A stretch of 64,000 bases of DNA from Bugula neritina (Eukaryota > Animalia > Bryozoa): the NCBI GenBank assembly GCA_964035545.1, contig OZ037773.1, positions 587,751 to 651,750 on the forward strand, written 5' to 3'. The notes under the pieces are model-generated. The model saw only the letters and a program-made list of their open reading frames with translations. It was not told where the DNA came from and ran no database searches. Every line of letters starts with the position of its first letter. Within the stretch, counting starts at the first letter, position 1. Both the position numbers and the translations under genes were made by a program. Positions 3,788-63,428 of the stretch are shown here, piece by piece.

Positions 3788-6700
3788 TCTTGTATGGAGA
3801 CCCTACTAAAACATTCACCGACAGATATGATCCACAGGCGTTTATTGATGGAGATAATGATACGCTTACAATGATCAGAATTGGCCACATGTATCAGACA
3901 TCAGATCAGAAGTATATCTACTTTGTTGACCAAAGATCTTGTGTTAGAAAACTTGACAGGATGGCTGTGAATCTCACAACTATAATAGGCAAAGGTCACT
4001 GTGGTAACAGCACACTCGGTTTTGATAGTAGCACAGACCCAAGAGATGTCTATGGTATGACGTATTACGAAGCTGCCGATACTTTCTTCATCTCTGTACA
4101 AGATGATGGTGTATACACGTTCAGCAGAACATCTCCTCAGCTTCCTTACACACAGACAGGCCTTCTGCCTCTCAGTGAAATATCCACCACAATTTCTGAT
4201 GGGATTGGAGATATGTTGACTGTAGGTGACATTGTGTGGCAGAAGGTTGGTGAAGGCCTAAACAAATACGATGTGAATGGATATCAAACTAACAAGAATA
4301 CCATTCTAGACTTTAGTTCTTCAGGGAATGCACAGAGACATTTAAGGTGAGTGAGAAATTAAGCATACAGTTTTCACCGAAATTGAGTAAGAAGTAAAGC
4401 AAAGTTTGAAAAGCACTTGCAGGATATGATTGGTCAATGTCTGCAGAATATAACCTGTTGTTGTCTAATAATATGGTGACTTTCAGAAATCATTTATAAT
4501 TTGTGCAGTTTCAACATTTTCAACATTTCAGCCACTAGGCAAAATAATGAGTTTGATGCAAAACTTCCGAGGACTATAAAGTGGATACCAGTTCTCTTCT
4601 CAAACCCAGTAATTGAGTGTATAGCTGTTTGTAGATTGAGTTCTACTTCATTAGATGTGTCTCTCAAATCTAGTTATATCTAGTGGGATTTTTTAGGTAC
4701 TCAGTCTACAGGCTAGCATTCTGATTAGCTACTTCGTTGATATAAATATATGCCGTTGTAGATATCCTAATAGAACAGCTGCTGTTTCTACACCAGAGGG
4801 AGTTATTTTACAGCATCCTTCAGACCCTGACTGGCTGTGTATTCTAGATAAGAAATATACGTCTCTGTTCTTCCATCATATTGTTGATGGTAAATACGAT
4901 TAAATATTTTATTAAAGGGGCAATCTGTATTATGTTTTCTGTGTATGGTGAAGCTTTATACATAAGTAGCTAAAGCTATTTATACTACATTTTAATAGAA
5001 TTTTATCCCTAAGAATATAATGGGACACGTTGAAGTCATGTGACATATGTTCTGCTAATATTGCAGCTGGTATGTAGTCAAATTAATTATAAGTTGTAGC
5101 ATACTTGGAGTGTTTCTTGTATTCATAGGCACTTTAATTAAGATGTGCTCAGGGAGCACCACCTCTCAGGATGGAGCTGCAGATGTCTGTATGTTAGAGG
5201 GTTTGACTGCTGGTGTTTGGGTCAATGAAACTCTGATGATAGTTTATGAAACTAACAGAACTATGAAAGAGATAGAATGGGGTAAGTGTACCGTGTAAGT
5301 GCATAGTGTAGGAGTACAATATAGGCGTATAGTGTAGATATATATTGTAGGTATAATGTATAATGGTTATACGGACAGGTGAATGTATAAAGGTTTACTG
5401 AAGGTATATATGATATTTGTGTAGGTACAATATATTTTAGGACCTAGGTGTATAGTGTTAGTAACATGTAAGGTTTATATATATCATATAATAATTATTG
5501 TCACTATACCTGTAAGAACCCATAATGAAGAGTTTTCATTCTTATGTTGCACAGGATCAATTATGACTGGATACTCTTCCTAGCATCACCAATAGACCAT
5601 GTAAATTTGGTACATTTACTGTCTTGTACTAATTCTAGAATACTCACCCTTATAATTTATATATACTTCTGCAAGTTCAAATGCAAAATGCATACTTCTA
5701 GAAAATAGCTGTGCAACTTTTATTACATGCATTATTTTATTTCATATCTTAAATTTATGAATCATAAATTCATTTTTCAAAATGTTTAATTTAAATGCTT
5801 AAAAAATGCAAATGAAAAGTACAAGTTTAAAAAAATACCCTGGTGCAAATTAACCGCAGCCCCAGCTGTTTTGGCAAAACACATTTAATAACAGTTTTAT
5901 TGACATAGTGGTAAAAAGGCTGGTTGTTTTTAGCAGTAGCCACGCTGCACAGCAACTTTATACAATTCTGATTGGCTGGACTCTACATGACCAGCTGATA
6001 ATTGTATCTGATTGGCCTAATAATGCATTTGCGTTTGAAAATGTAGAGTTTTATATAAGTTATAATAGTAATAATTTAGAGTTGGTACACACCCCTATTT
6101 TGGTTGAGTTTTATATTCTGATCACGCTGTAGTCATCTACAACACTTCAGTGTATGGGGGAATTATTAGTATTACGAAATCTGTTTTGGCTTACATTGCT
6201 ATGCCAGTTTTCTGGCTTAGTTTGTAATCAACTATATTTAGGCTGTTATAACTTAGAGTGGTTTCATCAAAAGTAGACATTACTTTAGGCCTTAGAACAT
6301 CCAATCAACCAATACTGTTACTTGGTTTTATTGTATAACAGTAGTGAAAGCATAGCACACTAGCGCAGTTTCTGATCTGTAATGGCAGTGACCACACTAA
6401 ACTCATCATGATTATCCTACAAATGTAATGACATTAGCCATGGGACAATATAGTCTAGAATCTAGACTCTAGATTTTAACTGCGAAGTAATCAGCCTCAA
6501 ACCATTGCTGAATGAAATGTCTACATTTGGCTGAGAAGCTACTGTAATAACATCAACAATTTTACTAATGAGTTTTCAATACTTGTTTTAGTCAATTGGA
6601 TATAATACAAAAGTTCTCTGAAATGGTAGAATAAATGGTGATTTAAACATTGGACTTGATGGACATTTTTGATATTGTGTGATGCAACATAATAGTTACA

Positions 6701-61703: not shown

Positions 61704-63428
61704 ATGGAGTATCTAACTGAATTATATCTGATCACTGTTACTGCTGTAGTCAGCATGTCAGGGTATGGTGTTTCAAACAGTAAACTACTTTATACTCAAT
61801 TTGATCAGCCTAACTTTCAGTTAAAATGCAAACTCTACACCTTAAATTTTTCAAGCTGTTAAATAGCCCTACGTACATCTAATATGAGTATTTGTTATGG
61901 ATTCTACTTTAAAATTTTATGCAAAAAAATTCGTACATTTTTTTTATTTCGTTTTCGTTATGAACTCATAGAAAAGTTCCAGATTTAGATAAAAATAAAG
62001 AATTCAAAAATTACCATCTGGTTGTAATAATTGTATTATGTTGTTTTTTTATTTTTGCAGAATTTGTCAAAGTATAGATATGACAATAGATGATGGAGTA
62101 GTAACATCGTTAGCTGCAAACTTCTATCTTTTCTTACCCATTGGCACAGCTTACTATCTTGAAGCGAATGGCATGCAGGTACGTGACTGAGCAAGGGTTT
62201 GATGTCGGCTCTTATTTGAACATGATATATTATCCCATGTTTGCTATATTATACTGAGCAACTCAATTTAAAATATATGTCATTTACAGCCTATTATATT
62301 ATAACAATTGATGAACCTTATGCTTTTGTTGATCAAAGCATCTTATAGAACCAGCAACTGAAAACTGCATCAGAATAAAAATGAGCATGGTCTATTAAAA
62401 TCTTTTGTGGCAATGTAACATAAATTAATACAGTAGGCCTACCGCCTATGGTATCAACAGGGAGAAGCAGCAAGTACATGTTATAATATAGATGAAGCAG
62501 TGCAAATTAATAAAATTGCATTGCTTCAAAACAGCATATGAAAAAACACAAATTTGAATTTGAAATTTGTTATAGTTCAAATCATGAGCAGAATTTTAGC
62601 CAATTTTTTCAATAAAAATATATTTCTCAGCACAACATTTTTATAAACATAATAATAAACAGAAAAATAACTTAACTAAATCCACTACATTGACATCAAC
62701 ATTAGCTAATATAATGTAGAACGAAACCTGAATGCTGAATTATATGTATTGCCTTCCTTCAATTTTATCCTTCCATATTACTTAGTTTATAGAACCAGAT
62801 TTTTTCAGGCTCAACCACTGTGTAATCTCTTGTCACTTTCTTTTTTGCAGCAATCTCTTATTTTCTTCTTGTCCCTATTCTCTCTCTCTCTCTCTCTCTC
62901 TCTCTCTCTCTCTCTCTCTCTCTCTCTCTCTCTCTCTCTCTCTCTCTCTCTCTCTCTCTCTCTCTCTCTCCATGCTAATGTAAACTTCTTAATTTCTTAA
63001 TTCTTTGTGAGGTGATGCTTTCATATACAGAGTTGACATTCTTTTGCATTTTTTTGAACTGATTTAAAAAATCCTTCAACAGAAACTATACGCGAGTTCA
63101 ATTAAATAGTTGCCTAGCATTGCATCAGATTGATCTCCATTTCTCAAGTCAATATAAATTATCAGCAACATTATGTTATGAAACATTGGCCATACTATTG
63201 CAAACTATGTAGGCCAATCTTTGTAAGAACAGTAGCTGTTATAGGACATGTATTTTCTGCGTTAGTGAGCTAGAATGGTATGATCTAATATTTTGCTTGA
63301 TTTGTTATTTTAGATAGACTTGACAGATCCTACACAGCTGTTGATAGGTGTGATGCCTCAGGTGTCTCTCAAGAGAACTGCTGCTATTTCTAACTTGCCA
63401 ATTGATAATGTGACACAACCGCTTACAG
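61704..63428 (+). CDS. Copy F (3'-partial): exons 1-3 of a more divergent paralog, head-to-head with E
   Basis: 61704-61762 (MEYLTELYLITVTAVVSMS, phase 2), 62061-62178 (GICQSIDMTIDDGVVTSLAANFYLFLPIGTAYYLEANGMQ, 118 nt), 63314-63428 ([38 protein letters not shown], 115 nt). Exon 2/3 sizes and all phases match B-E. Confidence 0.8.
62879..62970. repeat. (CT)n microsatellite
   Basis: Direct reading. Confidence 0.95.

Follow-up and report, generated by a model that had tools for sequence, protein, structure and literature searches.

What kind of protein is encoded by a set of repeated genes in a bryozoan genome, and how has one part of each gene been kept nearly identical while another part was exchanged from copy to copy? 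The genes lie in a window of 64,000 nucleotides (nt) of Bugula neritina DNA, positions 587751-651750 of contig OZ037773.1 (C9 below), in a 216-Mb assembly of 321 contigs (GCA_964035545.1). An initial annotation, made from the letters alone, had described a tandem cluster of surface receptors in which one ectodomain, resembling an NHL propeller, stands on interchangeable stalks, anchors and tails. On balance we favour a related answer: the genes would encode a family of surface glycoproteins whose propeller binds a shared extracellular partner, and whose copies differ in their height above the membrane, their anchoring and their contacts inside the cell. The gene family and its fold are very probable, and the proposed mechanism of gene conversion plus cassette exons is probable; for a receptor function, judged from the predicted proteins, the chances seem about even. 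Gene structure, copy number, fold class, purifying selection, the conversion tract and the modular tails are taken below as established.

The most conspicuous member of the exon set is the fourth exon, of 559 nt. Comparison of the window with itself (tblastn and blastn) finds it five times, in copies A to E, with a protein identity of 92-94%, and the six-frame list of open reading frames (ORFs) has five ORFs of ~190 amino acids (aa):

3788-4346, + strand, exon 4 of copy A
23543-24101, + strand, exon 4 of copy B
30561-31119, + strand, exon 4 of copy C
38992-39550, + strand, exon 4 of copy D
58800-58242, - strand, exon 4 of copy E

Copy B is the most readily modelled, with the following structure:

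22174-22220, 22587-22704, 23179-23293, 23543-24101, 24520-24647, 25172-25324, 26371-26502, 26815-26844, 27553-27650, + strand, the nine exons of copy B (459 aa), all borders AG/GT

Read base by base, these exons measure 47 coding nt, then 118, 115, 559, 128, 153, 132, 30 and 98 nt; spliced, they give 1380 nt and the 459 aa that had been claimed. The predicted product has a signal peptide, an ectodomain of ~355 aa (~350 in the initial annotation), a Thr/Ala stalk, one transmembrane (TM) helix, which is the only TM peak, and a 7-aa tail, and it carries six N-x-S/T sequons. Signal peptides and TM helices were judged by hydropathy and by eye. When the exons of B are projected onto the other copies, the set of 118/115/559/128/153 nt is found again with AG/GT borders, fixed phases and open exons 2-6 in A, C, D and E, and also in F and G past the window end. 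Only three deviations occur: exon 6 is 156 nt in C and 111 nt in D, and the donor of exon 5 in E is AT instead of GT. The exon sizes (118/115/559/128/~153 nt) and phases of the initial annotation were thus correct almost to the base, as were its outer bounds, 3788 being the first base of exon 4 of A and 63428 the last base of exon 3 of F. Its count of at least six paralogs and a remnant agrees with the five copies of the 559-nt exon, the first exons of F and one remnant in the window. The surrounding DNA is AT-rich (29-37% G+C), with long introns, microsatellites and retrotransposon fragments, and the gene structure is of the animal type.

In the whole assembly, a protein search with the 559-nt exon detects ten close copies, seven of them (A-G) at C9:587-661 kb and the other three at 8.03-8.20 Mb of contig C6. 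About five distant relatives, all on C9 (0.84, 2.72, 5.12, 5.557 and 5.564 Mb), came to light in a profile search; the match at C9:2,718,343 is weak. Ten close and about five distant copies are therefore our answer on genome-wide copy number, which the initial annotation had proposed as a check. Marine invertebrate genomes are highly heterozygous, and a perfect 942-nt palindrome between D and E could signal a local assembly problem, so that collapsed or duplicated haplotypes might have been taken for paralogs. We consider the probability of such an artefact negligible. Exons of the cluster copies differ by 4-30%, their introns are largely unalignable and carry different transposon insertions, one copy is inverted, the 3′ halves with the C-terminal exons are all different, and three more copies lie on the separate contig C6. 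Moreover, among independent DNA unitigs of one public run, a unitig of 267 nt inside exon 4 has a depth of 664, against 98 for a stretch unique to B (6.8x), which fits six to seven copies with identical letters in that piece. The summed unitig depth of exon 4 is ~7-11 times that of unique parts, consistent with ~10 copies. In this run, the single one of DNA unitigs holding the locus, the B-specific stretch differs by ~1.5%. Joints between unitigs were considered as evidence for cDNA and rejected: they lie off the exon borders and reflect differences between paralog introns and a 42-nt deletion in D.

The relatives of these proteins are few. A phmmer search with the exon-4 peptide against 1.84 billion representatives gave 16 matches, and clear homologues (E <= 1e-10) among these representatives are only Watersipora subatra 'uncharacterized' proteins and an 88%-identical JGI metagenome fragment. 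The four Watersipora proteins, 30-34% identical to the exon-4 peptide, are likewise organised as signal peptide, ectodomain (~380 aa), TM helix and tail. Their alignment extends over the full ectodomain, also where this corresponds to exons 2, 3, 5 and 6. A weaker match (E 3e-4) comes from Logan contigs of 1.5-2.2 kb in three runs (SRR27482142, SRR27482143 and SRR27482136). These contigs are intron-free and mRNA-like, with an uninterrupted ORF of 477 aa which ends in a hydrophobic tail resembling a glycosylphosphatidylinositol (GPI) signal, without a cytoplasmic part. Nothing beyond the sequences already known came from word-based searches for homologues that started from P0005 or from the family alignment. 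Among the distant paralogs, that at C9:5114000-5123999 (C9:5.118 Mb) has its large exon split by introns and is the orthologue of Watersipora XP_067939979. The TM region and three cytoplasmic-tail exons of the two are 52-58% identical, with the motifs N-I-N-F-L-Y-N-K-A and R-A-R-P-L-P, and R-P-L-P-x-x-P. This paralog is probably a founder-type receptor of the family and apparently its older member, and its conserved TM region and long tail suggest that the family began as a signalling or adhesion receptor. A literature search gave no publication that deals with this family, and the paper on the Bugula neritina genome goes no further than weak Alr1-like similarities. The family appears to be undescribed and, as far as our searches reach, restricted to bryozoans. 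The initial annotation had also called it undescribed, and its only annotated relatives are indeed the Watersipora subatra 'uncharacterized protein' entries.

Several lines of evidence point to a six-bladed NHL-type beta-propeller as the fold of the ectodomain, with a remote membership below the Pfam threshold. AlphaFold2 modelled residues 17-400 of Watersipora P0002 with a predicted TM-score (pTM) of 0.76 and a mean predicted local distance difference test score (pLDDT) of 72, as 24 or more strands in six groups of four. The input alignment had 21 rows, including exon peptides from the window and exon pieces of two distant paralogs. The exon-4 peptide of the window, folded alone, forms three four-stranded blades at pLDDT 83-91. 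Shape searches of the ESM Atlas lead to NHL/TEN_NHL clusters at TM-scores of 0.63-0.68, both from the AlphaFold2 model and from the Atlas model of the same Watersipora protein, and solved NHL domains are the closest structures to the model of this homologue. At the sequence level, the family profile matches the NHL domain of SOQ1 among PDB sequences at a marginal E of 5e-4, in an alignment that covers the segment singled out by the initial annotation. An hhalign comparison with a small NHL profile yields 95% probability over 83 columns, again a marginal match. The language-model neighbours of the exon-4 peptide are NHL clusters (0.94-0.96, with 176-185 shared features), individually marginal, and the likewise marginal phmmer tail at E ~1e-4 consists of proteins assigned NHL or TEN_NHL by Pfam. 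Blade 2 shows an NHL-like succession of DG, a hydrophobic run ending in D, C/I-R-K/R-(hydrophobic)-D and T-(hydrophobic)2-G. An Asp, a Cys and an Arg of this motif are invariant in the family, and so is a W-x-K-V-x-x-G-x-N-x-Y motif in blade 4. Two pairs of Cys are also kept family-wide, with a spacing of 20 residues for the pair in blade 2 and of 14 for that in blade 6; together with the six sequons of B they fit an extracellular location. The resemblance to NHL blades that had been claimed is thus supported by the six-bladed model; the marginal profile matches and language-model neighbours agree with it, with the Pfam NHL models silent. The NHL- or TolB-like propeller of six blades that the initial annotation expected is seen in the model of the Watersipora homologue, and three blades of it in the exon-4 peptide, with a remote membership below the Pfam threshold.

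A propeller of this kind could also be catalytic. The fold clan is rich in lactonases and lyases, and structural neighbours at nearly the same Z-score include PAL, SMP-30/gluconolactonases, paraoxonase and a Diels-Alderase. In addition, a propeller followed by an O-glycosylated stalk is the architecture of hemomucin (PMC3998921). The products might then be membrane-tethered or shed enzymes or mucins, either with a lactonase-, PAL- or strictosidine-synthase-like propeller or with a hemomucin-like role in clotting or lectin binding. We regard this as unlikely, since the exon peptides and homologues have no Pfam match to the SGL, Str_synth, Arylesterase or PAL models, the family-invariant residues make no recognisable metal-binding set, and the top structural matches are non-enzymatic NHL domains.

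If the ectodomain is a propeller, how uniform is it between copies? The initial annotation spoke of one homogenised ectodomain. This is true of the exon-4 core, ~345 bp and roughly blades 2-3, and does not extend to exons 2, 3, 5 and 6, which differ by up to 30%:

23603-23949, + strand, conversion tract as located in copy B (exon codons 20-135, ~345 bp, roughly blades 2-3), with near-identical synonymous sites in all ten paralogs

Among all cluster copies, exon 4 has an identity of 93-97%, with a ratio of nonsynonymous to synonymous divergence (dN/dS) of ~0.23, and exons 2, 3, 5 and 6 are 70-96% identical, with dN/dS of 0.4-0.5. Within the cluster, dS is 0.05 in the core and 0.47 and 0.26 in the two ends of exon 4; between the C9 and C6 clusters the values are 0.10 for the core and 0.75 and 0.375 for the ends. 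The core therefore has 5-9 times less synonymous divergence than its flanks, and third-position differences are significantly fewer in it in five of the six pairs tested. Theoretically, constraint on the synonymous sites of the core could leave the same trace. This was rejected on the basis of a metagenome contig, X, which matches copy I at 91% identity through exon and introns and acts like the orthologue of that copy from a related genome. In the pair X-I, dS is 0.13 in the core and 0.20 and 0.14 in the ends, that is, there is no contrast between core and flanks. The synonymous sites of the core are therefore unconstrained and gene conversion is the cause of their similarity. This pattern of divergence indicates that the core is homogenised among paralogs by conversion, which reaches across contigs. 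The remaining exons are mosaic: exon 2 of E is 96% identical to that of B and D, and that of A 70%, and exons 5 and 6 place E outermost and A with B. Overall dN/dS is 0.2-0.5 and stays in this range outside the conversion tract, with dS there rising to 0.3-0.9; these ratios show purifying selection on the predicted propeller.

Past exon 6 the copies part company. The last base of exon 6 opens a codon that the next exon completes, and all exons further downstream are likewise entered in phase 1. The stalk exons (132 + 30 nt in B, 90 + 33 or 51 nt in A, 180 nt in D) are all of phase 1-1 and multiples of three in length, so that the propeller could be joined to any stalk, or straight to the TM exon as in C, without a change of frame. 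The copies other than B and the remnant were modelled as follows:

3788-4346, 4762-4889, 5129-5281, + strand, exons 4-6 of copy A, from homology and splice borders
9320-9409 (90 nt), 9761-9793 (33 nt), 16068-16324 (TM and Cys-rich tail), + strand, predicted C-terminal exons of copy A, entered in phase 1
19106-19161, + strand, exon-1-like signal-peptide exon of the remnant, with a GT donor
~20306-20475, + strand, stalk-like exon of the remnant, without an AG acceptor
28902-28948, 29314-29431, 30190-30304, 30561-31119, 31828-31955, 32973-33128, 34393-34529 (TM exon), + strand, copy C (419 aa)
35761-35807, 36173-36290, 36760-36874, 38992-39550, 39998-40125, 41066-41176, 46918-47097 (stalk), 50629-50726 (TM), + strand, copy D (451 aa)
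60006-59951, 59625-59508, 59132-59018, 58800-58242, 56706-56579, 56179-56027, 55635-55463 (stalk), TM-homologous from 55230, - strand, inverted copy E (span 55130-60006)
~62061-62178, 63314-63428, + strand, divergent exon 2 and exon 3 of copy F

Exons 2 and 3 of copy A lie upstream, 961-244 bases before the start of the window. The predicted product of A is longer than 483 aa, with a poly-Thr stalk, a unique TM helix and a 60-aa tail with a C-x-C-x2-C-C cluster; its 33-nt stalk exon has an alternative donor at 9811, giving 51 nt. The exon for the TM helix and the Cys-rich tail has no second copy in the cluster or near the three C6 copies, and is linked to A by order, phase and open frame only. 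Predicted C (419 aa) passes from exon 6 directly to the TM exon and is stalk-free, and its 20-aa tail contains YYSL. The TAG of B is TAT (Tyr) in C, and with the stop codon lost the tail runs 13 codons into what is the 3′ untranslated region (3′UTR) in B. Predicted D (451 aa) has a 60-aa stalk and is consistent in frame. Predicted E has a single stalk exon of 173 nt, not a multiple of three; its TM-homologous exon is out of frame and ends after a hydrophobic stretch of 14 residues. Copy F is a real sixth copy, whose exon 4 starts 226 bases past the window end, followed there by exons 5 and 6 and a mucin-like stalk of ~150 aa. Copy G, also outside (window-equivalent 75301-75564), has a different TM helix with an Asp and a different, basic tail. 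The initial annotation had anticipated most of these 3′ halves: the poly-Thr stalk (now the 90- and 33-nt Thr exons), unrelated TM exon and Cys-rich tail of A, the medium stalk (132 + 30 nt) and 7-aa tail of B, the stalk-free C with a Tyr-motif tail and the fused stalk exons of E. For D, the long stalk (180 nt) is real; the frame switch is not, D being in frame and the shift occurring in E.

Other features in and between the copies are these. The intron 3 of A, ~4 kb long, contains a fragment of a long interspersed nuclear element (LINE) and a (CCA)n array, and a long microsatellite stands before the presumed TM exon. The remnant, situated between A and B, has no propeller exons between its two parts. 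The enlarged intron 3 of D holds a retroelement fragment. The same satellite is found just 3′ of the TM exons of both C and E, which indicates that the unit of duplication took in the 3′ flank. The palindrome lies between the tail-to-tail copies D and E, with related pieces at 33237-33619 within copy C, and represents a foldback element or else an artefact of the local assembly.

1318-3282, intron 3 of copy A, LINE-type endonuclease ORF (Exo_endo_phos, - strand, 1811-2611), then ~380 nt of (CCA)n, and (TA)n
15434-15856, ~420-nt (GTN)n microsatellite with a long Val-rich ORF, between the stalk exons and the presumed TM exon of A
37930-38595, - strand, reverse-transcriptase fragment (weak RVT_1 match) in intron 3 of D
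34736-34965 and 54440-54990, ~19-nt tandem satellite 3′ of the TM exons of C and E, arrays ~79% identical
50992-51933, perfect 942-nt palindrome with 471-nt arms, 100% complementary and without spacer, an identical 122-aa ORF on each strand without Pfam match

Similar ectodomains combined with different stalks, anchors and tails in one cluster recall loci of self/non-self or paired activating and inhibitory receptors, and the host is a colonial bryozoan with its nearest homologues in another, Watersipora. The propeller might then bind homophilically or allele-specifically, with tails giving opposite signals. The NHL propeller of teneurin determines homophilic specificity (PMC5851990), and the Asp in the predicted TM helix of G is a further point of this kind. 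We nevertheless find this explanation distinctly improbable. Conversion and purifying selection have kept the ectodomain core alike between copies, whereas known allorecognition determinants are hypervariable there, although the comparison here is of paralogs, not alleles. The tails are without an immunoreceptor tyrosine-based inhibitory or activation motif (ITIM or ITAM) consensus, and an (I/V/L/S)-x-Y-x-x-(I/V/L) motif is absent from the predicted tails of A-E. No charged residue occurs in the TM helices of A, B, C and D, the Tyr tail of C is a read-through into a former 3′UTR, and the literature search gave no paper linking NHL repeats with allorecognition. In a more specific version, Bryozoa would have in this cluster their first molecular candidate for the recognition of self and non-self or of kin, with an NHL propeller in place of an immunoglobulin (Ig) fold. 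A variable rim, encoded by the ends of exon 4 and by exons 2, 3, 5 and 6, would confer specificity, and output would change through swaps of stalk, anchor (TM or GPI-like) and tail. We mention it as a speculation to which we give little credence.

Another explanation starts from the damage visible in the array. Exon 6 of D (41066-41176) has an in-frame deletion of 42 nt that removes 14 residues, among them the second Cys of a family-conserved pair. In E the donor of exon 5 (56706-56579) reads AT where GT is expected; 12 nt further downstream lies a GT in frame. The TM exon of E is frame-shifted. With the remnant between A and B, the large transposon-filled introns of A and D and gene models predicted from DNA alone, the array might be largely dead: young duplicates, no longer expressed, which look conserved through their youth and through conversion. 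This seems highly unlikely to us, because exons 2-6 are open in every copy with all splice sites but one intact, and the low dN/dS persists outside the conversion tract. Furthermore, the Watersipora homologues are annotated genes, and one relative is found on intron-free contigs in three runs.

Returning to the surface glycoprotein reading, we propose the following scheme. Each gene would encode a signal peptide and a six-bladed NHL propeller of ~355 aa that carries about six N-glycan sites and two disulfide pairs conserved in the family. After the propeller would come a mucin-like stalk rich in Thr, Pro and Ala, of 0 to ~150 aa, then a membrane anchor and a short, variable cytoplasmic tail. 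The cluster probably grew through tandem duplication and one inversion. Gene conversion would hold the ~345-bp core of the large exon near-identical in ten copies, three of them on another contig, and phase-1/phase-1 cassette exons past exon 6 could be lost, duplicated, fused or replaced without breaking the frame. Each copy would present the same propeller at a different height and on a different anchor and tail. We infer that the propeller binds a common extracellular ligand or partner and that what distinguishes the copies is presentation and coupling to the membrane or the cytoplasm, not specificity. The extracellular hallmarks, the purifying selection, the conversion of the core and the older C9:5.118 Mb member with its conserved tail are the reasons for this preference.

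A number of observations pull the other way. First, hmmscan at E up to 10 gave no NHL, TEN_NHL or SGL match for the exon peptides of the window or for the full-length Watersipora and Logan homologues. Second, the full propeller model is that of a 33%-identical Watersipora homologue, not of a window protein, and its mean pLDDT is only 72. Third, the hhalign match to a small NHL profile has an optimistic E-value, the profile having been made from the query's own weak matches. Fourth, a search for RNA runs of this species returned none; splicing and expression are predicted from the sequence only and, like surface location and ligand binding, count here as inferred. Fifth, D, which lacks 14 aa including a conserved Cys, and E, with its lost donor and shifted frame, are damaged, and part of the cluster may be decaying. 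Finally, neither a ligand or partner nor a tail motif points to a function.

The locus is of interest in several respects. It holds a protein family missed by domain databases and seen so far in bryozoans alone, whose molecular cell biology is almost unexplored. Two opposing processes act in one cluster: conversion freezes the propeller core in ten copies on two contigs, and cassette exons leave stalk, anchor and tail free. If the proteins are receptors, they would add a scaffold that is neither Ig nor leucine-rich repeat to the expanded families of invertebrate surface receptors and would provide a concrete locus for colony recognition, settlement or symbiont handling. For the present the family is an annotated curiosity.

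How does the family compare with known systems? Clusters of paired immune receptors, the Hydractinia Alr complex and the Botryllus fuhc region are likewise tandem arrays of type I membrane proteins; their ectodomains are related, their tails vary and gene conversion acts between copies. They differ in having Ig-like or other folds, hypervariable recognition domains and defined signalling motifs, whereas in the window cluster the core is homogenised between copies and no such motifs were found. Extracellular NHL propellers are carried by teneurin and PknD (PMC5851990). Teneurins share with the window proteins the extracellular NHL propeller and a single pass through the membrane. However, teneurins are type II proteins of ~2,700 aa with EGF repeats, a YD shell and a toxin-like domain, and the window proteins are type I (N-terminal signal peptide, C-terminal TM helix), of 420-500 aa and without any other Pfam domain, so that the sequence relation is at the level of the fold family only. 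In insect hemomucin, located on the cell surface, a propeller of the same fold clan, also six-bladed, precedes a Thr-rich region with heavy O-glycosylation (PMC3998921, citing Theopold et al. 1996). The window family shares this succession of propeller and Thr-rich mucin-like stretch; hemomucin is encoded by one gene and does not form a tandem family with exchanged anchors. The window family also differs from strictosidine-synthase-like surface mucins in that Pfam finds no Str_synth domain (PF03088) in its exon peptides or homologues. With NHL propellers at large (PF01436 and PF25021; SOQ1, NHLRC2, the PknD ectodomain, teneurin) the family has in common six four-stranded blades and the NHL-like pattern of blade 2, alongside individually marginal matches at the profile level, and with those of PknD and teneurin also the extracellular placement. 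It departs from them in keeping the motif in only one or two blades, in going undetected by the Pfam NHL models, and in having its own W-x-K-V-x-x-G-x-N-x-Y motif in blade 4, two family-specific disulfide pairs and a propeller that serves as the stand-alone ectodomain of a small type I protein. The fold, the extracellular NHL propeller and the layout of propeller plus mucin are therefore already known. What is new is the family itself, its restriction to bryozoans within our searches, and the pairing of a propeller core frozen by conversion with stalks, anchors and tails that can be swapped without a change of frame.

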